A stretch of 64,000 nt of DNA from Macrostomum lignano. Taxonomy: Eukaryota. The position numbers and the translations under genes are program-made. Below are positions 7,571 to 52,100 of the stretch, one piece after another. Location of the stretch: the NCBI GenBank assembly GCA_002269645.1, contig NIVC01001856.1, positions 62,001 to 126,000 of the forward strand, read 5' to 3'. A model generated the notes under the pieces. The model was not told the origin of the DNA and ran no database searches. It saw only the letters and a program-made list of their open reading frames with translations. Within the stretch, counting starts at the first letter, position 1; the number at the start of each line of letters is the position of its first letter.

Positions 7571-8236
7571 CGGGTATTATCTCTCCATCATTTTCATCTC
7601 TCCCTCATCTTCCTTGCACCGTAGCTCTAATCCCTCTAATTATAATTTGTTCCAGTGCAGCCTATCAAGCAGTGGAGCATTCATCACGGTTCCGAAAAAT
7701 TGCGTGAATTCCGCTTTGATTACTAATTTAGCGAGCTGCACTACCTTTAGCTGACTCAATGAATTAATTACACATTGTTTTTTTTAACCTAGCATTCTAT
7801 AGTGGTATTATACTCGTAAAATATACAAAAAACCAAGCTGATTATTAATATTCAATTTGACGCTTTGTATTTACCTAAGTTTTTCTTGGTTAATACAAGA
7901 ATTATCTTGCTACTTTTTAGCGTAAAATTGTCTTATTGCTACTAGCTATTAGTAGCAAGAACGACATGTTATGAAATTTTATATACACATATCAAGCATA
8001 AATATAAACTTTACTTAGGGAATTTTGTAAAACAGTTGTTTCACTTTTGTTAATATATACCCAGACAAATAGACTAATGAACAGAACCTAATGCTTTCTT
8101 GAGTCGATAGTTATTATTTAAAACCGCCTTGTTTGTTCATGATAAGCTATAAGTTGATATTTTTTATATTTACTAAAAATCAACAAAGACCTGCTATTAC
8201 CACTTGAAGCAACAAAGACGCTATAGAATCCAAGCC

Positions 8237-11200
8237 ATGTCATCACCAGCTGCTGATGAAGCTGCTAAGCGGGAGGCCACCCAGCCAGCCGCCGCTGCCG
8301 CCGATACAGTCGGAGCAGCCGCCACACCGAACGGCGGCAACTACAAAGACTCTGTCAACGCTCTCAGATCAACTTTCCTAAGCGGCCAGACTCGCCCGCT
8401 GTCCTGGCGCCGCAAGCAGCTGGAGGCGCTGTACGCGCTGCTCACCGACCAGGAGGACCGCATCGCGGAGGCGCTCTGGCAGGATCTGCGCAAATGCCGG
8501 CAGGAGGCGGCCGCCGCCGAGCTGCTCATCCTCAAGGCCGACATTGCCAAGCTGAACCGCGACCTGCCTCAGCTGACCGACATTCATAAAGTGAAGAAGA
8601 CCTTCATTAGCATGATGGACAACCTCGGCCTGCAGCAACAGCCATACGGAGTCGCCCTCATTATCGGCGCCTGGAATTATCCGTTCCAGCTGACTCTGAT
8701 GCCGCTGGCCGGCGCCATCGCAGCTGGCAACTGCGCTCTGGTCAAGCCGTCCGAGATTGCCTCGGCCTCCGCCGCCTTGCTGGCCGAACTGGTGCCCAAG
8801 TATCTGGACCAATCCTGCATCCGTGTTGTCTGCGGCGGCGCCAAGGAGACCCAGGAGCTGCTCGAGCAGCGATTCGATTATATCTTTTATACTGGCAGCT
8901 CCCGAGTTGGCCGGCTGGTCATGGCCGCCGCTAGCAAGCACCTGACCCCGGTGACACTCGAACTGGGCGGCAAGTCCCCCGTCTACGTGTCCGAAGGAGT
9001 GGATTTGGGCCAGGTGAGATGGGATCTGGGCTTAGGTGAGAATGGGATAGAAACTGGTCAGGTGATATGGGATCTAGGCCGGGTGAGATGGGATCTGGGC
9101 CAGGTGAGATTGAATCTGGGCCAGGTGAGATCGGATCTGGGCCAGGTGAGATTGGATCTGGGCTTAGGTGAAAATGAGATAGAAACTGGCCAGGTGATAT
9201 GGGATCTAGGCTAGGTGAGATGGGATCTGGGTTGAGTGAAGTGGATCTGGACTAGGTGAGATGGGATCTGGGCTTAGGTGAGAATGAGATAGAAACTGGC
9301 CAGGTGATATGGGATCTGGGCCGGGTGAGATGGGATCTGGGCCAGGTGAGATTGAATCTGGGCCAGGTGAGATCGGATCTGGGCCAGGTGAGATGGGATC
9401 TGGGCCAGGTGAGATTGGATCTTGGTCAGGTGAGATCGGATCTGGGCCAGGTAAGATTGAATCTGGGCCAGGTAAGATTGAATCTGGGCCAGGTAAGATT
9501 GAATCTGGGCCAGGTGAGATTAGACCTAGGCCAGGTGAGATCGGATCTGGGCCAGGTGAGATTGGACTCTATTTCAGGTGAGATACTCTTCTTGTCCCCC
9601 GTAGGTGTCCAAGCGGCTAGTCTGGGGCAAGTTCTTAAACGCAGGCCAGACGTGCATCGCCCCGGACTATGTGATGTGCCCGCCGGAGCTGGCCCAGCCG
9701 CTGGCCGACGCCGTTGCCGCTCAGATTGCGGAGTTCTACGGCCAGGACCCGAAGGCCAGTCCAGACTATGGCCGGATCGTGTCCGATAGAATGTTCGACA
9801 GGATTGTCGGCCTAATGCAGGCTAGCAAAGCTGATAGGTGGGCCGGTTTGCCTCGCTCTGTTGGTTGCTAAATAGGACATTCTTCTCTTCTGCTAACAGG
9901 GGAATTTTATTCGATGGTAGGGGGATTCTTCTGAGCTGATAAGTGAATTTCCAATTTTTTAAGATCCGACTGAATACTTTTAGGCGGGATTTCTGACTCG
10001 CTCTGGGCGAGTTTATTGCTTTATTAGTGGGGGAATTTACGGCCCGATTAAGAGATAATTATTTTTTTACGAATTTATTGTTGCACTAAAGGAAGATTTT
10101 CTAAATCACTTAGGAGATATTTTTTTCTTGTGCTAACAAGAGATTTTGATTAGGAGGGAATCTCTTACCAGCTCAGAGAGGGAATCTCTCCGGCTCAGGG
10201 AGGGAATCTCTCACTAGCTTTGGGAGGGAATCTCTCACCGGCTCAGGGAGGGAATCTCTCACTAGCTTTGGGAGGGTATCTCTCACCGGCTCAGGGAGGG
10301 AATCTCTCACTAGCTTTGGGAGGGAATCTCTCACCGGCTCAGGGAGGGAATCTCTCACTAGCTTTGGGAGGGAATCTCTCACCGGCTCAGGGTGGGAATC
10401 TCTCACTAGCTTTGGGAGGGAATCTCTCACCGGCTCAGGGAGGGAATCTCTCACTAGCTTTGGGAGGGAATCTCTCACCAGCTCAAAGAGGGAATCTCTC
10501 ACCAGCTCAGAGAGGGAATCTCTCACTAGCTTTGGGGGGGAATCTCTCACCAGCTGAGAGAGGGAATCTCTCACCAGCTCAGAGAGGGAATCTCTCACTA
10601 GCTTTGGGAGGGAATCTCTCACCAGCTCAGAGAGGGAATCTCTCACCGGCTCAGGGAGGGAATCTCTCACCAGCTCAGAGAGGGAATCTCTCACCGGCTC
10701 AGGGAGGGAATCTCTCACTAGCTTTGGGAGGGAATCTCTCACCGGCTCAGGTAGGAAATCTCTCACTAGCTTTGGGAGGGAATCTCTCACCAGCTGAGAG
10801 AGGGAATCTCTCACCGGCTCAGGGAGGTAATCTCTCACTAGCTTTGGGAGGGAATCTCTCACCAGCTCAGAGAGGGAATCTCTCACCGGCTCAGGGAGGG
10901 AATCTCTCACCAGCTCAGAGAGGGAATCTCTCACCGGCTCAGGGAGGGAATCTCTCACTAGCTTTGGGAGGGAATCTCTCACTAGCTTTGGGAGGGAATC
11001 TCTCACCGGCTCAGGGAGGGAATCTCTCACTAGCTTTGGGAGGGAATCTCTCACCAGCTCAGAGAGGGAATCTCTCACCGGCTCAGGGAGGGAATCTCTC
11101 ACTAGCTTTGGGAGGGAATCTCTCACTAGCTTTGGGAGGGAATCTCTCACCAGCTCAGAGAGGGAATCTCTCACCGGCTCAGGGAGGGAATCTCTCACTA

Positions 11201-12461
11201 GCTTTGGGAGGGAATCTCTCACTAGCTTTGGGAGGGAATCTCTCACCAGCTCAGAGAGGGAATCTCTCACCGGCTCAGGGAGGGAATCTCTCACTAGCTT
11301 TGGGAGGGAATCTCTCACTAGCTTTGGGAGGGAATCTCTCACCGGCTCAGGGAGGTAATCTCTCACTAGCTTTGGGAGGGAATCTCTCACCGGCTCAGGG
11401 AGGTAATCTCTCACTAGCTTTGGGAGGGAATCTCTCACCGGCTCAGGGAGGGAATCTCTCACTAGCTTTGGGAGGGAATCTCTCACCGGCTCAGGGAGGG
11501 AATCTCTCACCAGCTTATAGTTGAAATTTCTCTTTCTTTAATTAGAACATACACTATACACATTAGCTGTAAATCATGGAGTTCTTATTCCCGCCAACGA
11601 CGGCAGGGCCACTGGAGGTGACACGGACCGCGATGCCCGCTACATCGCCCCGACTGTGTACACCAACGTGCGCGCCGATGACGCCCTGATGCGCGAGGAG
11701 ATTTTCGGCCCGCTGATGCCAATTATGCCAGTTAGCGGAGTCGAAGAGGCTGTGTACTTCATCAACAAATGCGAGAAGCCGCTGGCTATTTATGTTTTTA
11801 CTCACGACGGCAGCGTGAAACGGCGCTTCGAGGAGCAGACAAGCTCAGGGGCGTTGGTCTTTAACGACGTGGTCATCCACGCCGGCATGGAGACCCTGCC
11901 GTTTGGCGGCGTCGGGCACAGCGGCATGGGCAAGTATCACGGAAGGTGAGCCGATTTTTTGCTTAGCCATACGGTATAGTTGGGTATGTGGTTCACGGAT
12001 AGGATATCTGATTCACGGGTAGGTTATCTGGCTCACGGATCAAACAGCTGACTCACAGGTATATGTTTCACGAACTGTTTGTATATGATATGTATATGAT
12101 TCACGGTTTTTTATATGATTCACGGGTAGGGTATATGATTGACGAATTGGGTATATGATTAACGTGTTGATTACCTGGTTGATATATTACCTTGATTTAC
12201 TTTAAAAGTTCTCCCATAATCTAAGTGCATTAGAGACAGGGTGCTCTCAGTCAGTACTTATAAACCAGTCACGCTTTCCCCAGGTTCACATTTGACACAT
12301 TCTCGCACCAGCGGGCCCTGCTGTACAAGAGCTCCTCGGCCACTTCCGAGATGGTCAACAACAAATTTCGCTATCCGCCGTACAATGATAGCAAACTGGC
12401 CTGGGTGAACTGGGCTCTGAGCAGCTCGGTGAAGAAGGGATCCACCTGTGTGCTCATGTGA
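8237..12461 (+). CDS. ALDH3: Aldehyde dehydrogenase family 3 (fatty aldehyde dehydrogenase-like), 508 aa, C-terminal CaaX
   Basis: Exons 8237-9013, 9605-9837, 11607-11945 and 12284-12461 (1527 nt, phases consistent). Motifs GAWNYP, FYTGSSRVG, TLELGGKSP, WGKFLNAGQTCIAPDY (catalytic Cys), EEIFGPL, LPFGGVGHSGMGKYHG. Ends CVLM*. Confidence 0.96.
9001..9585 (+). repeat. 21-bp tandem repeat derived from the ALDH3 exon 1/intron 1 junction
   Basis: Unit GATCTGGGCCAG|GTGAGATGG matches the exon end GATTTGGGCCAG plus the donor GTGAGA. Confidence 0.9.
10155..11515. repeat. 24-bp minisatellite with two alternating variants in ALDH3 intron 2
   Basis: Units AGGGAATCTCTCACCGGCTCAGGG and AGGGAATCTCTCACTAGCTTTGGG, about 56 copies. 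Confidence 0.95.
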
Positions 12462-15146: not shown

Positions 15147-15738
15147 ATGTCAGGTGATGATGAAGAGGCGGACCAGCCGCCGCAGCAGCAGCAGCAGCAG
15201 GCAACCGTAGGTTTGTCTTCCAACGTGTGCAGCTGCGCCGAGCTGGCAATCAGCAATCGGCAGCTGCGAACGCGCTGCGAGCAACTGGAAGCAGAGGTCG
15301 CCAATCTGCGGGAGCAGCTGGCAGCCGCTTTGGCCGCCACAGGCGTTGCCGCCGAAGACAAGCAGAGGCGGGCCAGTAGCTCAGCGTTCAACCGTCCGGA
15401 TGCTGAAGAAGATGGCGAGCTCAGTGTTGAAGACATTCTCCGGTCCACTGCTCAGGAGATGGCCAGGGAGGCCGCCGCCGCCACGGCCGCCGAGCCCGCC
15501 GCCGGGTCGTCCATCGAAGCTGATTTGAAAGCCGCCGCCGAGGAGGCACTCGGCAGTCAGGGCTACGTGTACGATGAGCGGACTGGTCTGTATTATGACA
15601 CGGCTAGCGGATACTACTATGACCCTGTGAGTAGTATAGTGCCTGACTGCTGCCCACTCCTTGCTTTGCTACCATCTGTTAAATACTTTCTGTCTATACC
15701 TGCCCGTCTGCCTGTCTGTCTGTCCGTCTCTGTATGTC

Positions 15739-15815
<77 letters not shown>

Positions 15816-15840
15816 GTGTCTGTCTGTCTGTCTGTCTTAG

Positions 15841-15905
<65 letters not shown>

Positions 15906-16004
15906 GCCTGCCTTCCTGTCTGTGTGTGTGTCTGTCTGTCTGTCTGTCTGTCTGTCTTTCTGTCTGTATGTCTGTGTGTCTGTGTGTGTGTCTGTCTGTC
16001 TGTG

Positions 16005-16041
<37 letters not shown>

Positions 16042-16064
16042 GCCTGCCTTCCTGTCTGTGTGTG

Positions 16065-16125
<61 letters not shown>

Positions 16126-16152
16126 GCCTGCCTGCCTTTCTGTCTGTGTGTG

Positions 16153-16183
<31 letters not shown>

Positions 16184-16224
16184 ATGTCTGTCTGTATGTC
16201 TGTCTGTCTGTCTGTCTGTGTGTG

Positions 16225-16277
<53 letters not shown>

Positions 16278-16304
16278 TAGTGTCTGTCTGTCTGTCTGTC
16301 TTAG

Positions 16305-16361
<57 letters not shown>

Positions 16362-16364
16362 TAG

Positions 16365-16399
<35 letters not shown>

Positions 16400-18703
16400 G
16401 TGTCTGTCTGTCTGTCTGCCTGTCTCTGTCTTGTGTCTGTCTTGTGTCTGTCTGTCTGTCTGTCTGCCTGCCTTCCTGTCTGTGTGTGTGTCTGTCTGTC
16501 TGTCTGTCCGTCTGTCTGTCTGTCTGTCCGTCTGTCTGTCTTTCCGTCTGTCTGTCTGTCCGTCTGTCTGTCTGTCTGTCCGTCTGTGTGTCTGTCTGTC
16601 CGTCTGTCTGTCTGTCCGTCTGTCTATCTTTCGGCCTGCCGTTCACTTTTTTAATCATTAATGCGCTTTACAAGAGTTCAAAGGTAAAAGTCAGTTCGAC
16701 CAAAATGTTTTTAAAACCCTGCAACCTACCGCGCGCGCACCTTCAGACGGAGCAGCTGTTCTACAACAGCAGCACGGGGGTGTACTACACCTATGACAGC
16801 GCCAGTCAGCAGTACGTGTTCCACTCGCGCGTAGCCTTGTCGGAGCTGCGCCAGCGAGCGGAACTGATGGCCGTCATGAGCGGCCTTCAGCACCGGCCTC
16901 CTGAGCCTGCGGGCAAGCGCAGAGCTGCTGCACCGGTGAGCGAGTACCTGTCTGTGTCAGTGATGCTGTCATAGAGCCCTGCTGTGTCAGTGATGCTGTT
17001 GTGGAGCCTGTCTGTGTCAGTGATGCTGTCATAGAGCCCTGCTGTGTCAGTGATGCTGTCATAAAGCCCTGCTGTGTCAGTGATGCTGTCATGGAGCCTG
17101 TCTGTGTCAGTGATGCTGTCGTGGAGCCTGTCCGTGTCAGTGATGCTGTCATAGAGCCTGTCTGCGTCATTTATACTGTCAGGTAGTCAGTCTGTCAACG
17201 ATGCTGTCAGGTAGTCAGTCTGTCAACGATGCTGTCAGGTAGTCAGTCTGTCAGCGATGCTGTCAGGTAGTCAGTCTGTCAGCGATGCTGTCAGGTAGTC
17301 AGACTGTCAGCGATGCTGTCAGGTAGTCAGTCTGTCAGCGATGCTGTCAGGTAGTCAGTCTGTCAGCGATGCTGTCAGGTAGTCAGTCTGTCAGCGATGC
17401 TGTCAGGTAGTCTGTCATCCGGAAGCAACACCCAAAATTCCAGGCGGAGCGATCCCGAAGTCGCGAGCGGCACCTGGTCTCGGGCAGAAGGCGAAAACGC
17501 AAATTGGATTCCCACAGCAAATCGAAAACAAAGAGTAAACGGCGAAACACTGACGAAGATGGCGGACAGGAAAACGGCGATGGAGACAACGGGGAGGCTG
17601 GAGCCGCTGACTCCTCGGTCGGCTCCGAGGACCGGCGCTCAGATTCCAGCCGCAAGAAGAAGCCATCTAAGAAAGAGAAAAAAGTCAAAAAGGAGAAGAA
17701 AAAGAAGAAGACTTTAAAAAGCAAGCGACGGAAGCGACGCGATAGCGAAACTGACGTGGCGGAGGCTGGAGCAGCTGATGAGGCGGGCGACGCTGAGGAC
17801 CCCTACCCGCCCTGCATTCGCATGCTGGTGCTGGAGTCGCCCAGCCTGCCAGTCGGCTCGCTGCACATCGTCACCCACGACGGCGCCACTGTTGGCCGCG
17901 ACCCGGCCGCCCTGCCCACCCTGCTGCTGGCTGGCGACGCCTCGGTGAGCAAGCTGCACTGCCGGATCGAGTACAGCCGGCCGGACAGGCACTTCCAGGC
18001 GGTGGACATGGCCAGCCACACCGGCACGCTGATCGGCGGCCGGCCAATCAGTGACCGGCGCGAGATCAGCCGGCCTGCGGCTCTGCTGCACGGCTGCCGG
18101 CTGCGGATCGGCGCCACCGAGTTTCTCTGCCATATTCACCGGTACCCCGGTGAGGCCACTTGTTCCAGGTGCGAGCCCGGTCTTATACAGCGGCCGCAGT
18201 CGCCCGTCGCCGATGATTCGCCGAGCAGCGCCCCGGATCGGTGAGCCCAGCTGCGCCAGTTGAAGGCCAAGCACGGCCTCCTGGCGCCGGCAACTGGCGC
18301 GGCCGCCGCGGCGCCTCCGGGCTACGCGGACCGGGCCGCGGCTCGCAGGCGCGAGTTCGGCCTCGACGACGACTCGAGGCAGCTGGAATCAGGCGGCCGG
18401 CCGGTTGAACGTCAACAGGCTGCTGCGGCCTCCGTCGATGTGGCGCTGCACGAGCGGGAGGAGTCGAACCCGGGAGTCCGCCTGCTGGCCAGGATGGGCT
18501 GGCGGCCGGGCGACGGAGTCGGCGTCGGCGAACGGGCCGAGCGGAGTCTGCGGGAGCCGCTGGGCGCCGCGCCGCGCCTGTCGGAGCGGGCCGGACTCGG
18601 CTCCGAGCTCGGCCGGGCAGCGTCGAACGTCGACGCCGAGGCTGATCGGCGGCGTGCTCGAGTTGCCATGGTGACGCGTGAGCGATACGATCGGATTGGA
18701 TAG
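15147..18703 (+). CDS. AGGF1: Angiogenic factor with G-patch and FHA domains 1 (coiled coil, OCRE, FHA, G-patch); in-frame TGA at 18242-18244
   Basis: Exons 15147-15626, 16747-16935 and 17444-18703, all phase 0. [26 protein letters not shown]|TEQLFYN, FHA VGRD...[10 protein letters not shown]...DMASHTGT, G-patch [19 protein letters not shown]. The FHA and G-patch ORFs are in the same frame, separated by one TGA. Confidence 0.9.
15705..16630. repeat. (TCTG)n microsatellite in AGGF1 intron 1
   Basis: Long imperfect TCTG run. The SVCL/DRQT ORFs are artefacts. Confidence 0.97.
16950..17420. repeat. Two related 28-30-bp minisatellites in AGGF1 intron 2
   Basis: GTCAGTGATGCTGTCATAGAGCCCTGCTGT followed by GTCAGCGATGCTGTCAGGTAGTCAGTCT units. 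Confidence 0.92.
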
Positions 18704-19860: not shown

Positions 19861-20634
19861 GTCTGGTCGGTGCAGTTCGGGCCGAAATTCTAAATCAGTG
19901 CTTCATCATTGCGCTCAACAAAATAATTTTTGAATGCTGGGTTGAAATAAAAAAAAATTGGTTGAACAGGTAGGCCTGCTGTGACAATCTGTGTATTGCT
20001 TTCCTTCCTGTATGATTTTGTCCTTGTCGCTAGTTTTTCATGTAAGTCATTTTTCTCCTTGTCGGATGTGAACGCGAACTGAATTGTTGCAAGAGGTTTT
20101 TTTGCCTATTCGCTTTTTGTTTGGGAAACACTGCTTTAACATTCTAGCCTGTCTGTGCATGTTGTGTTGAAACTCATGAATGTTGAAAATACACGTTGCT
20201 CAATAGAATGCATTTATTACATTTTATAGTAACTGTCCTTGAACTGAAAAACTACTTTAAAATTTGTATGTTTTACATAAATATTTGCGCATTATTTTAC
20301 CGACATAATTCGCAGTGTATACCCATTCAAGCACCTGGGCCTTTCTATGCAGCCCCATCCTTGAGCAGTATTATAATATAAGCGCTCAGTGGCGAGGTGA
20401 AACCAAGGCTGGCTGACTCATGCGCTTTAAAGTATATGTTGCGGCAATGGCTGGGATAAATAAACCGTCAGCTGAATGACTGGAGTTTGCTAAGGAGAAA
20501 TTTTCCTTAATGCTGCTTATTTATGCAGTCTGAGCTTGCTTCACTTTCTTAGGCGAGTGTTTGCCCACTGAACTGCACCATATAAATTGCCATGGGACAT
20601 CAATGTCCTGTCTCAGTGTCCTCACCAATCAATT

Positions 20635-22280
20635 CTATTTCGACATCAGTGAACCTCTATTCCGACATCAGTGACCCTCTATTTCGACATCAGTGACCCT
20701 CTATTTCGACATTAGTGACCCTCTATTCCGACATCAGTGACCCTCTATTTCGACATCAGTGACCCTCTATTCCGACATTAGTGACCCTCTATTTCGACAT
20801 TAGTGAACCTCTATTTCGACATTAGTGACCCTCTATTCCAACATCAGTAACCCTCTATTTCGACATCAGTAACCCTCTATTTCGACATTAGTGACCCTCT
20901 ATTCCGACATCAGTGACCCTCTATTTCGACATCAGTGACCCTCTATTCCGACATTAGTGACCCTCTATTTCGACATTAGTGACCCTCTATTTCGACATTA
21001 GTGACCCTCTATTCCGACATCAGTAACCCTCTATTTCGACATCAGTAACCCTCTATTTCGACATTAGTGACCCTCTATTCCGACATTAGTGACCCTCTAT
21101 TTCGACATCAGTGACCCTCTATTCCGACATCAGTGACCCTCTATTTCGACATCAGTGACCCTCTATTTCGACATCAGTAACCCTCTATTTCGACATCAGT
21201 GACCTTCTATTTCGACATCAGTGACCCTCTATTCCGACATTAGTGACCCTCTATTTCGACATCAGTAACCCTCTATTTCGACATCAGTGACCCTCTATTC
21301 CGACATTAGTGACCCTCTATTTCGACATCAGTAACCCTCTATTTCGACATCAGTGACCCTCTATTCCGACATCAGTGACCCTCTATTCCGACATCAGTGA
21401 CCCTCTATTCCGACATCAGTAACCCTCTATTTCGACATCAGTAACCCTCTATTTCGACATTAGTGACCCTCTATTCCGACATTAGTGACCCTCTATTTCG
21501 ACATCAGTGACCCTCTATTCCGACATCAGTGACCCTCTATTTCGACATCAGTGACCCTCTATTTCGACATCAGTAACCCTCTATTTCGACATCAGTGACC
21601 TTCTATTTCGACATTAGTGACCCTCTATTCCGACATTAGTGACCCTCTATTCCGACATTAGTGACCCTCTATTCCGACATCAGTGACCCTCTATTCTGAC
21701 ATAAGTAACTCACTATTCCGACATCAGTGACCCACTCATTATTCCGATATAAGTGACCCACTCACTATTCCGACATCAGTGACCCACTCATTATTCCGAT
21801 ATCAGTGACCCACTCATTATTCCGATATCAGTGACCCACTCACTATTCCGACATCCGTGACCCACTCATTATTCCGACATCAGTGACCCTCTATTCCGAC
21901 ATCAGTGACCCTCTATTCCGACTTCAGTGACCCTCTATTCCGACATCAGTGACCCACTCATTTTTCCAATATAAGTGACCCACTCATTATTCCGATATAA
22001 GTGACCCACTCACTATTCCGACATCAGTGACCCACTCATTATTCCGATATAAGTGACCCACTCACTATTCCGACATCCGTGACCCACTCATTATTCCGAT
22101 ATCAGTGACCCACTCACTATTCCGACATCAGTGACCCACTCATTATTCCGATATCAGTGACCCTCTATTCCGACATCAGTTACCCTCTATTCCGACATCA
22201 GTGACCCTCTATTCCGACATCAGTGACCCTCTATTCCGACTTCAGTGACCCTCTATTCCGACATCAGTTACCCTCTATTG
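20635..22280. repeat. 22/26-bp minisatellite, array B (same family as array A)
   Basis: Unit TCTATTCCGACATCAGTGACCC and variants. Confidence 0.95.
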
Positions 22281-24052
22281 TTGGCGAAACAATCCTAAAT
22301 TATAAAATTCTGTAATTTAGGATTGTTTCTCGCTGAACTACACCTAGCTATTGACCGCCTTTTGAGCAGCTTATCTCGTCTCACACGGTATCATAGAGTA
22401 GAGATACGAAAGCTTGAATTAAATATCGAATAATGAGGCAGAAAATGCTATGGCTAGCGAAAACTTGAGACTAAAAAGAATGTAAGTCTCCATCTTGCTC
22501 CCGCGAGTCCATTTCTAATCATTAATTATTCAGTCAGATGAGGGTGAACCGGTACGGGGTGAGCAGCTGGCTGCCGCCATCTATCCGAGTGTATATTTCA
22601 TCTCAAGTTTCATACTTTTTCAATTAGCCTCGGCATCGCAGCAGCCGGTCAGAATGCGGATTAGCTTGAGCTAAAGACAAATTCATATTTGCCCTTACCC
22701 AGGGGATCTGGGACGCATGCTGACTGGCAAATCAATCAAGCAACACCGGCTCTCCGGGACTTCAGATTCTAGGATGCAGCTTCCACTGCGTGACAAGCTC
22801 GCTGCTGACAGCTGCAATAAAATCCAATGCGTTTAACTGGCAGAACATTTTTACAGCAGTATTATATGCGCGCAATTTTGCGAAAGATTTCTTAAGCATC
22901 CTCCAATCCGCTGCGGACGATGAAGGAAACAACAAGGGGACTTGTACCTTCCTAATTCCTAACATCTACTGCTCTTGCACTTTCGCCTCCATCGCCTGCA
23001 ATACTTAACTGTTCTAGCGCCAGGTGCATGCTCTGGGATGTGTTGAGCACACTTGAGCTGTTTAACAGGCTGTCAATCAATACGCCGGGAAATTAAGCTA
23101 ACAATTCCAAGATGCGTTTATCTTCTTGCATGCCACGCCAATTTTTATTGCACTCGTAATGACGCGCCCCAGAAACCCACGAGGCATCGGATCTTAGCAT
23201 GCGCTTTTTCTTGCCTAACCAGGGGCAGCCACTGACGTCCGAGCTTATGAATAGTTAATAGGAACTCGAGTTTCTTGTGTATAATAATACAACCTTTGCA
23301 CTTTCAATATGGGGTAAAAGGAACTGGCCAACAAACTCTATTCGTTTGCCTCAGACTCTTGAGCATTTGAAAAGTTTTGCTGTGCACAGACCTCTTGCAT
23401 GCGGGTACTTCTCTCCTTCAAGGGTCAAGAGCTGCTCTGTGTGTCCACGAACTGCGCTCCTTGTCAATCCTAATGTCTTCACCGGGCCGCTTCCGGGAGC
23501 GGAAAAGCTTCTTTAAGTTTCGCTTCGCTTCAGTTCAGTTTCAGAAGGGCCTTATCAAGCCGGCGCAGTCCCGCCATTTCGCTTCATTGCGTGCGCGGCT
23601 CGGGGCGTGCAGAAAGCTGCTGGCATAATGAGGCTGAGCAGTGGACTGCTAGGCCAGGCGGAGTCCGTTAAACTTCAACTTGGAATAAAACTAGTTTAGC
23701 TCAGGCTTTGGAGTTGAGAAGCTGCGCCTGTCTACTCAAATAATAGTTTTTTTTGTTTGCGATGTTACTCAGTTGAACACTTGTGAGCACTTGCTCAAAC
23801 TCAATTAATACGCTGTTAAGAATACATGCACTGTATTAAGTCATATTATACTTTACTAAAAGCAACACAATAGCGAGAGTAAGTTTATTTTAGTTCAACA
23901 GTCAGGGTGTAAATTAAGTAGGGCGCAGCAGAGACAGCAATACTTTCATCAGCTGCTCATGTGGGTTTTAAAATGTTTTGTTAAAGTTTCCAGTACCCAG
24001 CAATCTCAAGTAAGATTCATTCAGCCTCAGCAACAATGCGTATTTCATGGCT

Positions 24053-29121
<5,069 letters not shown>

Positions 29122-29191
29122 TCCTTGTGCTCTTTTACCTTGGGGTTGCGATAGGGGCCTCGCGGCCTATTCGCGGCGCCTGCGCCCCCCG

Positions 29192-30889
29192 TCAGTAGTA
29201 AGTAAGTAAGTAAGTAGCCCTCAGCGGCTGCTCTGCATCATTTCTCTCCCTAGAGCCGTCGGGCTCCGCTTCCTCTGCACCACCGCCGCCGCTGCCGCCA
29301 CCGCCGCCGCCGCTGCCCGCGTCGCCCCGGCACAGATAGCGCACTATCTGGATTAGCAAATCCATGATCTCCACAATCCAGATCAGCGTCACGCCGATCC
29401 ACATCGAGAACAGGCCTCCAACCTGGCTCAGCGTGCTGGGCAGGGTGCGCACCGCCTTTTCCTCGAACACCTTCACCATGTGGTCCTTCTTGGCGATCTT
29501 CACCGTGAGGAAGCTGCGGCTGATCAAGCTGTCCTCGTGCAGCGCCGCCGCGGCGCCCGGCTCGCCTCTTTTCAGCGCCTTCTTGATATTGGCGTAGTGT
29601 TGGACAATCTCTTTGTAGTGACCGCCCCTGCCGCGCTCGCTATGGCTGAGCATGCCGGCAAAGTCCAGGTGGAACGAGTGCCTCGGCCAGCCGGCCTGGG
29701 ACACGATGGTCTCGTAGGTGTAGTGAAAGCACGGCTCCCCGCACTGGCCCGTGCTGTTGTGCGCGATGCCGTTGTAGCATCGGGACGCCTTGGCCGCCCG
29801 GTTCAACTGGTCGGCGGTGATGTTCGCGACGCTGCCGAACGCCTCGCAAGGCCGGAGATCCCGGCTGGCCAGGCCTGGTGGCTCCGGCAGGGTGGCTGTG
29901 TAGCAGCCGCACTTGGCCACGATGGTGGCCTGCTTGCTCAGGCTGTCGCACAGGCGCGAGCTGTAGGCGAACTCCTCCCCGGAGGCCACGCGCAGTCTGG
30001 CGGGCACCTCGCCGCTGCACTGGCCCCAGGGCGGCTCCAGCCGATGCCAGGCATTTGGCACAATCTTCACCTCGGTGAAGGTGCCCGGCATGACGTTGAA
30101 GCCGTCCTTGCTGATGTCCGGGTAGGAGCCCTGCTCGTGCAGCACCAGCCGAGCGCCCCAGGCCAGCGTGTTGACGTCCACCATGAGACAGTCGATACAG
30201 TAGCTCTCGTTTGCTGAGTAGTCCAAGAACACCTGCATCTCCGTATAGATCACCTTGCTGGCGTACTCCGGCCTGATGTTGTACATGTAACAGTTCAGAT
30301 GGTCGGGGTGGTCGATGCGCCGCCACTCTCCGATCTCGTGACAAAGGATGTGGCCGACCGGCGGCTCTTCGTTGGGTTTGAGGACCACGGCGAAGCACTT
30401 GGTGACCAGCTGGTTGATGCTGTGGCCCAGCTCCGTGTAGTTGAAGTCCTTGTCGGGCAGATTGTACCAATAGTGCAGGTGATTCAGCAGGCTGTTCTTG
30501 TACGGGTCCATGGTGCCGTTGCTGGTGGCCGAGATCAGCCTGAGCAGGGCGCGCCAGTACTGCCTGGGCGTTGGCCAGCCGCGCTCCCTGATAACCTCCC
30601 GGCCCCGCCGAGACAGCGGGTTCTGATTGCACAGCGTGAAGCTCGGGAACGTGGCGCTTTGGTCCAGCCGACTTTTCGGCTGCTGAATGGTGTCAAACTG
30701 CAGGTACTGGCGCACGATCTCGTGCAGGTTGACCAGGCAGCCGATGAACAGGCCGGAGACGCAGACCAGCCACATGATTCTGATCCAGCCTTTGGCGCGG
30801 ACAATCTGCGGAATGCCCCGCAGCGAGGTGCGCATAGCGAAGCTGACAAAGATCTGGCGCATGCCGCCCGGCCGCCTGGCCTGACCCAT
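29192..30889 (-). CDS. Intronless DEG/ENaC (FaNaC/ASIC superfamily) ion channel, 565 aa, C-terminus now supplied by the LINE tail
   Basis: TSLRGIP pre-TM1, WLVCV TM1, FPSFTLCNQNP, NCYMYN, GARLVLHEQGSYP, Cys-rich thumb (CDSL..CGC..CY..C.EPC), QAGWP, TM2 [21 protein letters not shown]. The last residues TYLLTYY* come from the antisense LINE tail. Confidence 0.92.
   Translation of the reverse strand: MGQARRPGGMRQIFVSFAMRTSLRGIPQIVRAKGWIRIMWLVCVSGLFIGCLVNLHEIVRQYLQFDTIQQPKSRLDQSATFPSFTLCNQNPLSRRGREVIRERGWPTPRQYWRALLRLISATSNGTMDPYKNSLLNHLHYWYNLPDKDFNYTELGHSINQLVTKCFAVVLKPNEEPPVGHILCHEIGEWRRIDHPDHLNCYMYNIRPEYASKVIYTEMQVFLDYSANESYCIDCLMVDVNTLAWGARLVLHEQGSYPDISKDGFNVMPGTFTEVKIVPNAWHRLEPPWGQCSGEVPARLRVASGEEFAYSSRLCDSLSKQATIVAKCGCYTATLPEPPGLASRDLRPCEAFGSVANITADQLNRAAKASRCYNGIAHNSTGQCGEPCFHYTYETIVSQAGWPRHSFHLDFAGMLSHSERGRGGHYKEIVQHYANIKKALKRGEPGAAAALHEDSLISRSFLTVKIAKKDHMVKVFEEKAVRTLPSTLSQVGGLFSMWIGVTLIWIVEIMDLLIQIVRYLCRGDAGSGGGGGGSGGGGAEEAEPDGSRERNDAEQPLRATYLLTYY
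29215..29502 (+). repeat. 288-bp direct repeat, right copy (putative target-site duplication)
   Basis: Begins immediately after the (GTAA)n tail and is identical to 24127-24414. Confidence 0.95.
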
Positions 30890-38577: not shown

Positions 38578-39134
38578 CATTTGTGAGAACAGTATCTATG
38601 CGCGTTCAGCCCCCGTGAAAACTTTACCAAACGCTGCTTTCAAGATAGCAATTGAGAACATTTAGATGAGCCTGTCAGTTAAGAGAGGCCACACCGCCAT
38701 CCACTTGTGTCTTTTACCAGCCATAATGTTTTTCGGGGGGAAAATCGTGGAATTTTCCATTTGCAGCAAAATTATACGCCCGAGGCTTCATGAGCTCTTT
38801 GACAGTGATACTTAAGTCATGCAGGTAACCCGGCGGCTCACTCATTACACCTGCCAAGCACTGCTGCAGTTATTATTGCGCGTAGCATTTGCTACTCACA
38901 ACTGGCATTATCTGCGCATCAGCTGGGCGTCAGCAATGGCCAGGTCAGGCCATAATTGACGCGTGGCTGACCGACACCGCACCACACTATGCTAGCTTCG
39001 TTTGGCAGCTGAGTAAAACAAAAGCTTCAACTAAAACTTTTTCTAGCTATCATTTGCGCCGAGAATTTTGATTAAAATGAAAAGAGTTCATCCAGTTTGA
39101 GACTGCTACAATTGTGCTAATAAACCATGAGTTC

Positions 39135-40860
39135 CAATCTAATCTCACCGCTTCCACTCTCCTCTTCACCAATCTAATCTCACTGCTTCTACTCTCCTCT
39201 TCACCAATCTAATCTCACCGCTTCCACTCTCCTCTCCACCAATCTAATCTCACTGCTTCTACTCTCCTCTTCACCAGTCTAATCTCACTGCTTCTACTCT
39301 CCTCTTCACCAATCTAATCTCACTGCTTCTACTCTCCTCTTCACCAATCTAATCTCACCGTTTCCAATCTTCTCTCCACCAATCTAATCTCGCTGCTTCT
39401 ACTCTCCTCTTCACCAATCTAATCTCACCGCTTCCACTCTCCTCTCCACCAATCTAATCTCACTGCTTCAATTCTCCTCTCCACCAATCTAATCTCACTG
39501 CTTCAATTCTCCTCTTCACCCATCTAATCTCAGTGCTATCACTCTCCACTCCACCAATCTAATCTGACTGCTTCCATTCTCCTCTCCACCAATCTAATCT
39601 CACTGCTTCTACTCTCCTCTTCACCCATCTAATCTCACCGCTTCCACTCTCCTCTCCACCAATCTAATCTCACTGCTTCAATTCACCTCTCCACCAATCT
39701 AATCTCACTGCTTCTACTCTCCTCTTCACCCATCTAATCTCACCGCTTCCACTCTCCTCTCCACCAATCTAATCTCACTGCTTCAATTCACCTCTTCACC
39801 AATCGACGAGCGTAATCTCATTTCTTCCGCTCTCCGTTCTCCTCTCCACAAATCTAATCTTGCTGCTTCCGCTCTAATCTCAACCAATCTAATCTCAGTG
39901 CTTCCATTATCCTCTTCACCAATCTAATCTCTTTGCTTCTACTCTCCTCTCCATCTAATCTGACTGCTTCCATTCTCCTCTCGACTAATCTAATCTCACT
40001 GCTTCTACTCTCCTCTTCACCAGTCTAATCTCACTGCTTCTACTCTCCTCTTCACCAATCTAATCTCACTGCTTCTACTCTCCTCTTCACCAATCTAATC
40101 TCACCGTTTCCAATCTTCTCTCCACCAATCTAATCTCGCTGTTTCTACTCTCCTCTTCACCAATCTAATCTCACCGCTTCCACTCTCCTCTCCACCAATC
40201 TAATCTCACTGCTTCAATTCTCCTCTCCACCAATCTAATCTCACTGCTTCAATTCTCCTCTTCACCCATCTAATCTCAGTGCTATCACTCTCCACTCCAC
40301 CAATCTAATCTGACTGCTTCCATTCTCCTCTCCACCAATCTAATCTCACTGCTTCTACTCTCCTCTTCACCCATCTAATCTCACCGCTTCCACTCTCCTC
40401 TCCACCAATCTAATCTCACTGCTTCAATTCACCTCTTCACCAATCGACGAGCGTAATCTCATTTCTTCCGCTCTCCGTTCTCCTCTCCACAAATCTAATC
40501 TTGCTGCTTCCGCTCTAATCTCAACCAATCTAATCTCAGTGCTTCCATTATCCTCTTCACCAATCTAATCTCTTTGCTTCTACTCTCCTCTCCATCTAAT
40601 CTGACTGCTTCCATTCTCCTCTCGACTAATCTAATCTCACTGCTTCCATTATCCTCTTCACCAATCTAATCTCAGTGCTACCACTCTCCTCTTCACCAAT
40701 CTAATCTCACTGCTTCTACTCTCCTCTTCACCAATCTAATCTCAGTGCTATCACTCTCCACTCCACCAATCTAATCTGACTGCTTCCATTCTCCTCTCCA
40801 CCAATCTAATCTCACTGCTTCTACTCTCCTCTTCACCAATCTAATCTCACTACTTCCGCT
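39135..40860. repeat. ~35-bp minisatellite with a ~640-bp higher-order duplication
   Basis: Unit ACCAATCTAATCTCACTGCTTCTACTCTCCTCTTC. The distinctive variant AATCGACGAGCGTAATC occurs at 39801 and 40442. Confidence 0.93.
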
Positions 40861-44089: not shown

Positions 44090-45575
44090 GTTCTCTATCG
44101 AATCTCTATCCGATCTCTATCCTATCTCTATCCGATCTCTATCGAATCTCTATCCGATCTCTATCCTATATCTATCCGATCTCTATCGAATCTCTATCCG
44201 ATCTCTATCCTATCTCTATCCGATCTCTATCGAATCTCTATCCGATCTCTATCCGATCTTTATCCGATCTCTATCCAATATCTTTCCGATATATATCCGA
44301 TATATATCCGATCTCTATCCAATCTCTATCGAATCTTTATCCGATCTCTAGCCAATCGCTATCCAATCTCTATCCAATCTCTATCCAATCTCTATCCAAT
44401 CTCTATCCAATCTCTATCCAATCTCTATCCGATATCTATCCAATTTCTATCCAATCTCTCGCCGATCTCTATTCAATCTCTATCAAATCTCTATCCAATC
44501 TCTATCCAATCTCTATCCAATCTCTATCCAATCTCTATCCAATCTCTATCCGATATCTATCCAATCTCTATCCAATCTCTATCTGATATCTATCCAATCT
44601 CTATCCAATCTCTATCTGATATCTATTCAATCTCTATCAAATCTCTATCCAATCTCTATCCAATCTCTATCCAATCTCTATCCAATCTCTATTCAATCTC
44701 TATCCAATCTCTATCCAATCTCTATCCAATCTCTATCCAATCTCTATTCAATCTCTATCCAATCTCTATCCAATCTCTATCCAATCTCTATCGAATCTCT
44801 ATCCAATATCTATCCAATATCTATCCAATCTCTAGCCGATCTCTATTCAATCTCTATCCAATCTCTATCCAATCTCTATCCAATCTCTATCCAATCTCTA
44901 TCCGATATCTATCCAATCTCTATCCAATCTCTAGCCGATCTCTATCCAATCTCTATCCAATCTCTATCCAATCTCTATCCAATCTCTATCCGATATCTAT
45001 CCAATCTCTATCCAATCTCTATCCAATCTCTATCCAATCTCTATCCAATCTCTATCCAATCTCTATCCGATATCTATCCAATCTCTATCCAATCTCTATC
45101 CGATATCTATCCAATCTCTATCCAATCTCTAGCCGATCTCTATCCAATCTCTATCCAATCTCTATCCAATCTCTATCCAATCTCTATCCGATATCTATCC
45201 AATCTCTATCCAATCTCTATCCAATCTCTATCCAATCTCTATCCAATCTCTATCCAATCTCTATCCGATATCTATCCAATCTCTATCCAATCTCTATCTG
45301 ATATCTATCCAATCTCTATCCAATCTCTATCCAATCTCTATCCAATCTCTATCCAATCTCTATCCAATCTCTATCCAATCTCTATCCAATCTCTATCCAA
45401 TCTCTATCCAATCTCTATCCAATCTCTATCCAATCTCTATCCAATCTCTATCCAATCTCTATCCAATCTCTATCCAATCTCTATCCAATCTCTATCCAAT
45501 CTCTATCCAATCTCTATCCAAACTCTATCCAATCTCTATCCAAACTCTATCCAATCTCTATCCGATATCTATCCA
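44090..45575. repeat. 11-bp tandem repeat
   Basis: (TCCAATCTCTA)n with variants. Confidence 0.97.
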
Positions 45576-46188
45576 ATACTATAATAACTCCTGTCATTCG
45601 GCAAAAACTCGTCCCGTTCTCGTCCTTATCAAAAGTTCCCAACTGAAAGCCGTAATCAACAGTGAAAGATTCCAAGCGTTGCTAGTGAAAAATCTCAAGT
45701 AAGTACATTTCTTTGAGAAATAGGACTCTCCATTGCTTTCTTGGCTCTCTTGCCTCAAGCGACACCCTGCAGCTGGGCTGCACTTTTGGCTACTGGCACC
45801 CGGCAACAATCCGGATGACACAGCGGCCTTCATTTCCTGCTCGTTTCCTTGTATTCGAAAGCTCGAAATGTAGAATCTTACATGCATGGCTTACGCTTAG
45901 TGTAATGTTGAAAGTTTTCTTATAAAAAGTACATTTGCACTCTGTTGACAGCCTAACGGGTGTCCCAAAAAGGTGAAATTTTAAACCAAAACTGTGCAAG
46001 ACTATCTGCTCTTGGTTCCTAGCAACCACAAATGCTGAGAGTCAACATTCATAAGATTTGCTTCCCGCAGTTCTTATTTCAATTCATGAGAAACATCATC
46101 GCCATTGAAAGAATGAGTGAATGCCACAGACAAGAGGCTTATTTCTTATTTCGATTGATTTCGACTGATTCAAACTTGGCGGGAGTTG

Positions 46189-49100
46189 TCACACGCTTGA
46201 CTCCTGCAGCATCACTGTTTCCACTCGCTTCTTCACCCCATCTGGTGCCGCAACGGCGGTGCCGCCCACCTGCGTGTCGATGGCAGCCGGCCGGCAGCCA
46301 CAGCACCGTCTGGCGAGTCCGCACAGCCGGCTGGCCAGCAGGGCCTCGCGGAATTCCGCGTTGGCAGCGAAGTGGGCCACGGCGGAGGCGGCCATGCTGG
46401 ACTTGGCGCAGAGCAGCGCGGCGCGCACCAGAGAGCGGTGCAGCCGGCTGTGCTGCCGGATTGGCGAGGCCACGGCGACCGCAGCGGTGACGGCGTAGGG
46501 CGCCCAGCACAGCAGGAAGGCGCCTTGAAGGCGGAGCGAATGCGGTGACTTGATTTAATGGTCAGGCAAATGGCCTCAGATGGAGTGCCTAAAGCAGGGA
46601 CAAACACCATATTCTGTGACCAACACCATATTCTGTGACCAACACCATATTCTGTGACCAACACCAAATTCTGTGACCAACACCATATTCTGTGACCAAC
46701 ACCATATCCTGTGACCAACACCATATTCTGTGACCAACACCATATTCTGTGACCAACACCATATTCTGTGACCAATGGCCAGATGTGCAACCGACAGCTC
46801 AGCCGCAGCTATTGAGCCGCGCATCTGAAGGCTGCGTACGGCTGTTCAGTCCAAGGACTGGGGGGGTCGCCACACACACCCTCAATTACCCCAGCTAATG
46901 CTGGCACCCATTTTACAGCTGGGTGAACTGAAGCAATGCAGAGTTGAGTGTCTTGCTCAAGGACACAAATTTTTCCGAGTGGGATCGGGAATCGAACCCC
47001 CGACCTTTCATTCGTGAGACCGACGCTCTGACCACTAGACTACAACCCTCTTTCTAGTACATCCCGTGTGAGCGTGTGCATGAGCGCAAGCCTGAGTACA
47101 GTATTGGAGCACTGGCATGTGCTCAGGAGGCAGCGGAATGAGCAGAATTGACTCAGCACTGGTTCTGAAACTATGTCACGGAAGAAGTTGCGCTGTCCAG
47201 CCTCCTGCAATGATTACTGCAATATATTATTATACTACACTGTAGAAGTCGAAAGCAATCCTCACCGATCACACACAGGATGTGGATTGCAACGCGGCGC
47301 TCCCGCCTCAGCTGGCTCTCAGCCTGCAAACTGCTCATCTGCCGTTTCGCCCGCAGCTGGAATGTCAAAGTTGCGATGGCAGCTGGGTAAGCAAAGACAG
47401 GACTCGGTTTGAAACACCGACACTAGAAATCATTCACTGAGGCACAGTAAGAATTTGAAGTGGAAGCAGTTTACGTAGAACAAGAGCTTCCAGTAGAAGG
47501 CTGCATATGCTGAGACATAATAAAATATAGAAAGTAGAAATTGAAATACAGGAGTGGCCGCGTTCTCAAAGCACAGCCGGAGACATGATGAAAACGACAC
47601 AAGGAGAACAAAGACTCAAATCACTGGACACAGGTGCTCACGTAGACGAAGATCTTCCAGTAGGACACGCAGACACCAAGACATCGGGTGAAAGACACAG
47701 GATGAAATACACAATGAAATAGACACAGGATAACACAAACCCAAGCCTCAGCATGAGACACAGGTGCTCACGTAGGCGAAGATCTTCCAGTAGGACACGC
47801 AGACACCAAGACATCGGGTGAAACAGACACAGGATGAAATACACACAATGAAATAGACACAGGAGGACACAGACCCAAGCCTCAGTATGAGACACAGGTG
47901 CTCACGTAGGCGAAGATCTTCCAGTAGGACACGCAGACACCAAGACATCGGGTGAAACAGATACAGGATGAAATACACACAATGAAATAGACACAGGAGG
48001 ACACAGACCCAAGCCTCAGCATGAGACACAGGTGCTCACGTAGGCGAAGATCTTCCAGTAGGACACGCAGACACCAAGACATCGGGTGAAACAGACACAG
48101 GATGAAATACACACAATGAAATAGACACAGGAGGACACAGACCCAAGCCTCAGCATGAGACACAGGTGCTCACGTAGGCGAAGATCTTCCAGTAGGACAC
48201 GCAGACACCAAGACATCGGGTGAAACAGACACAGGATGAAATACACACAATGAAATAGACACAGGAGGACACAGACCCTAGCCTCAGCATGAGACACAGG
48301 TGCTCACGTAGGCGAAGATCTTCCAGTAGGACACGCAGACACCAAGACATCGGGTGAAACAGACACAGGATGAAATACACACAATGAAATAGACACAGGA
48401 GGACACAGACCCAAGCCTCAGTATGAGACACAGGTGCTCACGTAGGCGAAGATCTTCCAGTAGGACACGCAGACACCAAGACATCGGGTGAAACAGACAC
48501 AGGATGAAATACACACAATGAAATAGACACAGGAGGACACAGACCCAAGCCTCAGCATGAGACACAGGTGCTCACGTAGGCGAAGATCTTCCAGTAGGAC
48601 ACGCAGACACCAAGACATCGGGTGAAACAGACACAGGATGAAATACACACAATGAAATAGACACAGGAGGACACAGACCCTAGCCTCAGCATGAGACACA
48701 GGTGCTCACGTAGGCGAAGATCTTCCAGTAGGACACGCAGACACCAAGACATCGGGTGAAACAGACACAGGATGAAATACACACAATGAAATAGACACAG
48801 GAGGACACAGACCCAAGCCTCAGCATGAGACACAGGTGCTCACGTAGGCGAAGATCTTCCAGTAGGACACGCAGACACCAAGACATCGGGTGAAACAGAC
48901 ACAGGATGAAATACACACAATGAAATAGACACAGGAGGACACAGACCCAAGCCTCAGTATGAGACACAGGTGCTCACGTAGGCGAAGATCTTCCAGTAGG
49001 ACACGCAGACACCAAGACATCGGGTGAAACAGATACAGGATGAAATACACACAATGAAATAGACACAGGAGGACACAGACCCAAGCCTCAGCATGAGACA

Positions 49101-52100
49101 CAGGTGCTCACGTAGGCGAAGATCTTCCAGTAGGACACGCAGACACCAAGACATCGGGTGAAACAGACACAGGATGAAATACACACAATGAAATAGACAC
49201 AGGAGGACACAGACCCAAGCCTCAGCATGAGACACAGGTGCTCACGTAGGCGAAGATCTTCCAGTAGGACACGCAGACACCAAGACATCGGGTGAAACAG
49301 ACACAGGATGAAATACCACAATGAAATAGACACAGGAGGACACAGACCCAAGCCTCAGCATGAGACACAGGTGCTCACGTAGGCGAAGATCTTCCAGTAG
49401 GACACGCAGACACCAAGACATCGGGTGAAACAGACACAGGATGAAATACACACAATGAAATAGACACAGGAGGACACAGACCCAAGCCTCAGCATGAGAC
49501 ACAGGTGCTCACGTAGGCGAAGATCTTCCAGTAGGACACGCAGACACCAAGACATCGGGTGAAACAGACACAGGATGAAATACACACAATGAAATAGACA
49601 CAGGAGGACACAGACCCTAGCCTCAGCATGAGACACAGGTGCTCACGTAGGCGAAGATCTTCCAGTAGGACACGCAGACACCAAGACATCGGGTGAAACA
49701 GACACAGGATGAAATACACACAATGAAATAGACACAGGAGGACACAGACCCAAGCCTCAGCATGAGACACAGGTGCTCACGTAGGCGAAGATCTTCCAGT
49801 AGGACACGCAGACACCAAGACATCGGGTGAAACAGACACAGGATGAAATACACACAATGAAATAGACACAGGAGGACACAGACCCAAGCCTCAGTATGAG
49901 ACACAGGTGCTCACGTAGGCGAAGATCTTCCAGTAGGACACGCAGACACCAAGACATCGGGTGAAACAGACACAGGATGAAATACCCACAATGAAATAGA
50001 CACAGGAGGACACAGACCCAAGCCTCAGTATGAGACACAGGTGCTCACGTAGGCGAAGATCTTCCAGTAGGACACGCAGACACCAAGACATCGGGTGAAA
50101 CAGACACAGGATGAAATACACACAATGAAATAGACACAGGAGGACACAGACCCAAGCCTCAGTATGAGACACAGGTGCTCACGTAGGCGAAGATCTTCCA
50201 GTAGGACACGCAGACACCAAGACATCGGGTGAAACAGACACAGGATGAAATACACACAATGAAATAGACACAGGAGAACACAGACCCAAGCCTCAGCATG
50301 AGACACAGGTGCTCACGTAGGCGAAGATCTTCCAGTAGGACACGCAGACACCAAGACATCGGGTGAAACAGACACAGGATGAAATACACACAATGAAATA
50401 GACACAGGAGGACACAGACCCTAGCCTCAGCATGAGACACAGGTGCTCACGTAGGCGAAGATCTTCCAGTAGGACACGCAGACACCAAGACATCGGGTGA
50501 AACAGACACAGGATGAAATACACACAATGAAATAGACACAGGAGGACACAGACCCAAGCCTCAGCATGAGACACAGGTGCTCACGTAGGCGAAGATCTTC
50601 CAGTAGGACACGCAGACACCAAGACATCGGGTGAAACAGACACAGGATGAAATACACACAATGAAATAGACACAGGAGGACACAGACCCAAGCCTCAGTA
50701 TGAGACACAGGTGCTCACGTAGGCGAAGATCTTCCAGTAGGACACGCAGACACCAAGACATCGGGTGAAACAGACACAGGATGAAATACACACAATGAAA
50801 TAGACACAGGAGGACACAGACCCAAGCCTCAGTATGAGACACAGGTGCTCACGTAGGCGAAGATCTTCCAGTAGGACACGCAGACACCAAGACATCGGGT
50901 GAAACAGACACAGGATGAAATACACACAATGAAATAGACACAGGAGGACACAGACCCAAGCCTCAGTATGAGACACAGGTGCTCACGTAGGCGAAGATCT
51001 TCCAGTAGGACACGCAGACACCAAGACATCGGGTGAAACAGACACAGGATGAAATACACACAATGAAATAGACACAGGAGGACACAGACCCAAGCCTCAG
51101 TATGAGACACAGGTGCTCACGTAGGCGAAGATCTTCCAGTAGGACACGCAGACACCAAGACATCGGGTGAAACAGACACAGGATGAAATACACACAATGA
51201 AATAGACACAGGAGGACACAGACCCAAGCCTCAGTATGAGACACAGGTGCTCACGTAGGCGAAGATCTTCCAGTAGGACACGCAGACACCAAGACATCGG
51301 GTGAAACAGACACAGGATGAAATACACACAATGAAATAGACACAGGAGGACACAGACCCAAGCCTCAGTATGAGACACAGGTGCTCACGTAGGCGAAGAT
51401 CTTCCAGTAGGACACGCAGACACCAAGACATCGGGTGAAACAGACACAGGATGAAATACACACAATGAAATAGACACAGGAGGACACAGACCCAAGCCTC
51501 AGTATGAGACACAGGTGCTCACGTAGGCGAAGATCTTCCAGTAGGACACGCAGACACCAAGACATCGGGTGAAACAGACACAGGATGAAATACACACAAT
51601 GAAATAGACACAGGAGGACACAGACCCAAGCCTCAGTATGAGACACAGGTGCTCACGTAGGCGAAGATCTTCCAGTAGGACACGCAGACACCAAGACATC
51701 GGGTGAAACAGACACAGGATGAAATACACACAATGAAATAGACACAGGAGGACACAGACCCAAGCCTCAGTATGAGACACAGGTGCTCACGTAGGCGAAG
51801 ATCTTCCAGTAGGACACGCAGACACCAAGACATCGGGTGAAACAGACACAGGATGAAATACACACAATGAAATAGACACAGGAGGACACAGACCCAAGCC
51901 TCAGTATGAGACACAGGTGCTCACGTAGGCGAAGATCTTCCAGTAGGACACGCAGACACCAAGACATCGGGTGAAACAGACACAGGATGAAATACACACA
52001 ATGAAATAGACACAGGAGACACAGACCCAAGCCTCAGCATGAGACACAGGTGCTCACGTAGGCGAAGATCTTCCAGTAGGACACGCAGACACCAAGACAT

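Follow-up and report, generated by a model that had tools for sequence, protein, structure and literature searches.

The integration of LINEs by target-primed reverse transcription (TPRT) yields a target duplication when the second nick lies downstream of the first (PMC2881922), and the choice of nick on the second strand is an unresolved step of this process (PMC2881922). The resulting target-site duplications (TSDs) are typically ≤~20 bp for LINEs (PMC13295347), normally 5-30 bp for L1 (PMC5223499) and of ~11-25 bp median length for the Drosophila I, F and Doc elements (PMC8090852). L1 TSDs of >100 bp make up <10% of the events in HeLa cells, while in NER-deficient cells they account for most events; they have been attributed to a distant, possibly unrelated, second nick (PMC5223499), and Servant et al. 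(2017) noted that such long-TSD events can duplicate exons (PMC5223499). Servant et al. (2017) credit human L1 TSDs >100 bp to Gilbert 2002/2005 and Symer 2002 (PMC5223499).

In Macrostomum lignano, a natural genomic copy of a quite different LINE displays an event comparable to these. Within the window (the whole stretch of 64,000 nucleotides that was analysed), a full-length-looking element of 4,800 bp (24415..29214, + strand) lies antisense to a DEG/ENaC channel gene and is flanked by an exact direct repeat of 288 nt (24127-24414 and 29215-29502, 100% identical), as established by a repeat search of the 22-32 kb interval and by string comparison. This pair is the one long repeat reported in that interval, and an exact repeat of such length is far beyond chance. 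Most probably, TPRT has very recently inserted an active M. lignano LINE here, which came to lie antisense in the 3' end of this single-exon gene. The most noteworthy fact of the locus is the length of the TSD, 288 bp, generated by a LINE that is not an L1 and that bears an RNase H.

The element has the features of an APE-type non-LTR retrotransposon, namely AP-endonuclease and reverse transcriptase, a simple-repeat tail and a flanking TSD; no terminal repeats were detected inside it by the repeat search, which is consistent with a lack of LTRs. Its 49-nt 5' leader begins ATCGTCAATT... and is followed by ORF1 (24464..25303, +; 279 aa from the first ATG, no Pfam match) and by an intact ORF2 of 1,272 aa (25303..29121, +) encoding an AP-type endonuclease, a reverse transcriptase, an RNase H and a C-terminal Cys/His motif, with Pfam matches to PF14529 (Exo_endo_phos_2), PF00078 (RVT_1) and PF00075 (RNase_H). 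A short 3' UTR leads to ...GTCAGTAG(TAAG)4, the microsatellite tail (29199..29214, +), whose last base is 29214. The stop of ORF1 overlaps the start of ORF2 in a TAATG at 25299-25305. For SART1, an R1-clade element, a TAATG-type overlap of ORF1 and ORF2 has reportedly been described, serving translational coupling. The element shares with the R1/I-group (TRAS1, R1Bm, Drosophila I factor) the AP-endonuclease, reverse transcriptase, RNase H and C-terminal Cys/His motif, a microsatellite tail in place of poly(A), and the TAATG stop/start overlap; the first three of these activities are those of an I-factor-type ORF2 (PMC2881922). It differs from that group in that its ORF1 lacks a recognisable domain, and its TSD of 288 bp contrasts with the median of ~11-25 bp of I-, F- and Doc-type elements.

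The best PDB matches of the ORF2 endonuclease are TRAS1 and R1Bm, while L1 and R2 are also among the PDB matches for ORF2; identity to any named element reaches only ~25-35%. Evidence bearing on a named clade consists of automatic names and the endonuclease matches in PDB (TRAS1/R1). Judged from ORF2, which is 86-100% identical to fragments in >40 M. lignano UniProt entries, the family is abundant and young in this species. Many of the M. lignano UniProt entries P0009-P0063 are chimeric models carrying 95-100% identical pieces of this ORF2, including GPCR, C-type lectin, kinase, SET, RING and thioredoxin proteins. These chimeric entries are probably gene-model artefacts, and they show how often the LINE sits in or beside genes. 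A second copy of the LINE was found neither in the 64,000-nt window nor near two paralogs of the channel gene, for which ~51 kb of M. lignano sequence was searched, and exact-product look-ups for ORF2 and for P0004 returned no record.

The borders of the 288-nt repeat coincide with the ends of the LINE to the base: the left copy abuts the 5' end of the element and the right copy abuts (TAAG)4, while the outer side of each copy runs into native gene sequence. The right copy (29215..29502) comprises codons 463-558 plus base 1 of codon 559 and is continuous with the upstream coding sequence, whereas the left copy (24127..24414) runs on without a break into the 24 codons of the original end and then the 3' UTR. 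The sequence-only reading, which had described an exonic, antisense LINE insertion with a duplication, is thus borne out by an exact repeat that abuts both LINE ends. On the channel-sense (-) strand, the break lies at 5'-GAGGGCTA^GGAAGCG-3', inside codon 559 (the first of the original 24-residue tail), and the 3' end ...CTA at this nick meets, with TA/TAG microhomology, the cDNA made from the (UAAG)n tail. On the + strand, the break lies 288 nt away at 5'-GATCTTCA^CCGTGAGG-3', and its 3'-OH meets the 5' end of the LINE. Both sides of the LINE now carry the 288 nt that separate the breaks, and the whole 4.8-kb element has been copied. In the proposed mechanism, TPRT with a "downstream" second nick, at a stagger of 288 nt, would have produced the duplication; by our own derivation on the published model (PMC2881922), the junctions are oriented as they should be after TPRT whose stagger duplicates the target. 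Since the true 5' terminus of the LINE and junction microhomology leave the TSD length uncertain by 1-3 nt, the duplication may be shorter by that amount at either end.

The same junctions bear on two other origins of the repeat. Mis-assembly, by which an insertion with a short TSD, or two haplotypes or homeologs, would have been mis-joined so that 288 bp became doubled, deserves consideration in a genome that is repeat-rich, partly polyploid and hard to assemble (PMC5730564), and in a window with 38 tandem-repeat rows. However, a short TSD puts both junctions at one site, while here, in empty-site coordinates, 288 bp separate the 5' junction (X|LINE) from the 3' junction (LINE|X); combining an empty allele with a filled allele of short TSD yields neither of them, and repeat borders that match the LINE ends to the base also speak against a mis-join, which we regard as very unlikely. 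Alternatively, a 288-bp stretch of the exon could have been duplicated in tandem at an earlier time, with the LINE inserting later exactly at the junction of the copies. A (GGC)n-like low-complexity stretch could favour such slippage or duplication, but this history needs an insertion at the exact junction base without a TSD of its own as well as zero divergence between the copies, and the 96-codon duplication would give two TM2 segments, itself disrupting the channel. It is far less parsimonious than a TPRT insertion and is considered extremely improbable.

The insertion is very recent, since there are 0 differences in 288 nt, neither ORF of the element is broken and identity to sister copies reaches 100%. 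An empty-site allele of the channel was sought by exact look-up and homology searches of public collections, and none was retrieved. The filled allele is most likely young, probably polymorphic and neutral-to-hypomorphic, and would be tolerated by the genome of M. lignano, which is polyploid or duplicated; a newly adapted channel is unlikely.

Like the human L1 events with TSDs >100 bp, the M. lignano case combines TPRT, a second break hundreds of bp away and the duplication of an exon-sized target. The human events were obtained in cultured cells with engineered L1 and are enriched by NER deficiency; the present one, by contrast, is a natural genomic copy in a flatworm, and its LINE, which is not L1, bears an RNase H and a (TAAG)n tail. 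A 288-bp TSD is therefore an extreme yet known kind of outcome, and the locus is a new example of a rare event. The far-off second break probably arose from a displaced or opportunistic second nick, as proposed for the rare human L1 TSDs >100 bp. That TSDs at the hundred-bp scale are regular for this LINE family, or for second-strand processing in M. lignano, appears unlikely on the one copy examined; if they were, the second nick might, for example, be under weak NER-type control, as it is in human XP cells. Each insertion would then duplicate an exon-sized target and exonic hits would leave functional gene halves on both sides, which would feed the exceptional duplication load of the M. lignano genome; were long TSDs typical of the family, it would also serve as a natural system in which to study second-strand nick choice. 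In any case, the locus illustrates a rare TPRT outcome cleanly and in a natural setting, and it marks as currently active a LINE family of a regeneration model organism.

The gene that received the LINE encodes, as it now stands, a DEG/ENaC subunit of 565 aa (29192..30889, - strand; ATG at 30889, TGA at 29194-29192), and a TGA lies in frame 9 nt 5' of the ATG. Residues 17-510 align with positions 1-454 of the 455-position Pfam model PF00858 (ASC, amiloride-sensitive sodium channel; E=2e-52), and Kyte-Doolittle scanning places TM1 at residues ~35-55 (30725..30787, -) and TM2 at residues ~490-516 (29342..29422, -), the latter within the right repeat copy; translation and hydropathy further reveal many Cys residues between the two peaks. 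The nearly complete ASC match and the two hydropathy peaks uphold the earlier description of this upstream ORF as a complete two-TM channel. With the FMRFamide-gated Na+ channels (FaNaC) and ASIC it shares the full ASC domain, both TM helices and an FPSFTLCN motif that follows TM1. Among solved structures, FaNaC is nearest (7yvb, E=1.6e-21; 8on7, E=2.3e-20), with the ASICs at ~7e-12. Unlike ASIC/ENaC, the channel has SLRG in place of the pre-TM1 HG motif (RG at residues ~20-25) and GVT in place of the GxS filter of TM2 (residues ~498-502). The flatworm relatives (P0001-P0003, P0081-P0086) carry L/I-R-G for the HG gating motif of ASIC/ENaC and G-(V/L)-T for GxS. Since flatworm relatives carry RG and GLT, the variant motifs represent a clade trait and not damage.

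Identity of the channel to its nearest public proteins is ~29-39% at best. In the full-length homology search, the best full-length matches were M. lignano DEG/ENaC paralogs (27-29% identity), and an exhaustive search with representatives gave a best identity of 39%. The channel gene consists of a single exon, while its M. lignano paralogs are multi-exon, which suggests, at the level of gene structure, intron loss or an old retrocopy. Two paralog loci (L001 10001-15338 and L002 10001-16036) span 5-6 kb, with tblastn matches in at least two separated blocks. A retrogene origin of the intronless channel was also considered; no poly(A) remnant is evident past the 3' UTR.

The protein now ends in ...AEQPLRATYLLTYY, that is, ...AEQPLRA-TYLLTYY, according to the ORF translation. 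The LINE tail read antisense (aCT TAC TTA CTT ACT TAC TAC TGA) encodes TYLLTYY*, the tail-derived bases (29192..29214, -) together with base 29215 supplying these seven residues and the TGA stop. Residues 1-558 are kept, TM2 included, while residue 559 changes from R to T and is followed by six tail-encoded residues and the stop. The displaced original end, RKRSGGCRSAGSADGGCVMVVTTC (...VVTTC), persists as 24 codons at 24053..24126 (-), base 1 of the first codon being 24127; read from 24126 to 24053 on the - strand, it is directly continuous with the left repeat copy. When the pre-insertion protein is reconstructed without the LINE and one repeat copy, it forms one open frame of 582 aa. Two further statements of the sequence-only reading hold accordingly: translation confirms that the antisense tail substitutes TYLLTYY* for the original 24 residues, with seven residues encoded by the tail, and those 24 residues are still found in place, joined to the left copy and restoring the 582-aa frame on rejoining. 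The insertion allele is thus predicted to encode a 565-aa two-TM channel with a 7-residue end derived from the LINE tail.

That reading had further held the channel to be intact because the duplication covers TM2. The 288-nt repeat does contain TM2, but this is only one way to view the outcome, since the ORF is intact through the position of the first nick and a short TSD would have been equivalent. TM2 is kept in the upstream ORF because the LINE 3' junction, i.e., the first nick, precedes the stop by 24 codons, and the protein outcome is independent of TSD length, as a normal TSD of 10-20 bp at the same nick gives an identical protein. The long TSD adds an orphan second copy of TM2, the old tail and the old 3' UTR beyond the LINE. 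This orphan fragment contains a 120-aa ORF at 24415-24053 (-). Within 24053-24415 (-), an ATG-initiated frame of ~112 aa (MVKVFEEK...TM2...VVTTC*) is followed by the original 3' UTR and poly(A) signal. The 5' end of human L1 has antisense promoter activity; that the orphan fragment would be expressed, which it could be only if the 5' end of the present LINE had such activity, is pure speculation.

The AATAAA of the original 3' UTR (23884..23889, -), 163 nt below the old stop, is now ~5.3 kb below the new one, and the first canonical AATAAA on the channel strand past the new stop is at 27960, which is 1,254 nt into the LINE. Since no AATAAA lies close after the new stop, a message would have to use a cryptic site or carry a 3' UTR of great length; it would either end within the antisense LINE or extend over 5.3 kb as far as the old poly(A) signal. 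In drawing its stop and predicted 3' end from antisense TE sequence, the allele resembles the terminal-exon TE insertions that replace a C-terminus and 3' UTR. Apart from its unusual TSD, it is an ordinary TE allele of recent origin. The message could also escape this fate if the LINE were removed as an intron, from a donor in the upstream repeat copy to an acceptor at the matching position of the downstream one, giving the original mRNA and the ...VVTTC protein. AG|GT occurs at repeat offsets 30 and 78 (donors 29470 and 29422, acceptors 24383 and 24335), splicing at either pair restores the exact frame, and M. lignano genes have on average ~5 introns of 1.1-1.4 kb (PMC5730564). Nevertheless, both donors are weak (GTGTTC, GTTGGA), the acceptors are not preceded by a polypyrimidine tract, and the intron would measure 5,088 nt in an otherwise intronless gene, making such removal highly improbable.

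No transcript-derived model or protein of the channel gene was found in the public collections searched (about 15 billion proteins), and the reconstructed original C-terminal 196 aa, used as a query, gave no match. The M. lignano paralogs of the channel do have transcriptome-guided gene models in the collections. The absence of a public model hints weakly at a gene that is poorly expressed or lacks annotation, and it is silent on which allele is transcribed.

A consequence for trafficking or scaffolding had been suggested from the loss of the old C-terminus, on the premise that ASIC-family C-termini ending in Cys bind PDZ proteins such as PICK1. The premise stands for vertebrate ASIC1 and ASIC2, whose distal C-termini are bound by the PDZ domain of PICK1, but not for ASIC3 or for alpha- and beta-ENaC (PMC8555555). 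The channel described here, being nearer to FaNaC, falls outside the ASIC1/2 subfamily. For comparison, the C-termini of 3 M. lignano paralogs and of 7 top representatives of the exhaustive search were read to their true ends. None of these ten relatives ends in Cys, and no shared or PDZ-type ending was found among them, the ends including ...SRQAA, ...RLPET, ...LGIVS, ...FYKRR, ...KNDGV, ...ELPNT, ...QPTSS and ...SVTHH. The T-T-C end of the old tail may or may not be a PDZ ligand, comparison with relatives lending it no support.

Altered trafficking or scaffolding by loss of a PDZ-binding end is accordingly not upheld for this FaNaC-like channel. In its full form, the proposal requires that the insertion allele be expressed and yield a working channel whose trafficking or scaffolding is changed through the lost PDZ-binding ...VVTTC end. 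The complete ORF with both TM helices, the T-T-C end of the old tail (Thr at -2, Cys at 0) and the PICK1 binding of ASIC1/ASIC2 are compatible with it, but the restriction of that binding to ASIC1/2, the closer affinity to FaNaC, the lack of a conserved or Cys ending in the ten relatives, the missing model or protein and the distance of a poly(A) signal from the new stop all weigh against it, and we give it very little credence. The tail swap would be of consequence only with an expressed allele and a functional tail, neither of which is indicated here.

With regard to genome context, the DV1 line of M. lignano has extra large chromosomes, and its assembly is PacBio-based (PMC5730564). The minisatellite density of the window is extreme (38 TRF rows with units of 4-134 nt) and fits published accounts of the genome (PMC5730564). 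Together with the ORF2 and paralog matches, this density assigns the window, on sequence grounds, to M. lignano or a very close relative. Among the arrays called by TRF are those at 10153-11516 (48-nt unit), 20634-22279 (22-nt unit), 39134-40857 (35-nt unit) and 44092-45577 (11-nt unit). Several long "ORFs" of the window are minisatellite arrays read through, which give rise to spurious Pfam matches. Other host gene fragments occur at 1637-2707, 8204-9214, 15147-16974 and 60180-61049, and comprise an Ion_trans/PKD-like channel, an aldehyde dehydrogenase, OCRE-domain ORFs split by a (GTCT)232 array, and a C-type lectin. Furthermore, a 7-kb satellite array at 47627-54636 (134-nt unit, ~52 copies, 99% match, strong A-over-T skew) abuts a 7tm_1 GPCR-like ORF at 54580-55248 (-).
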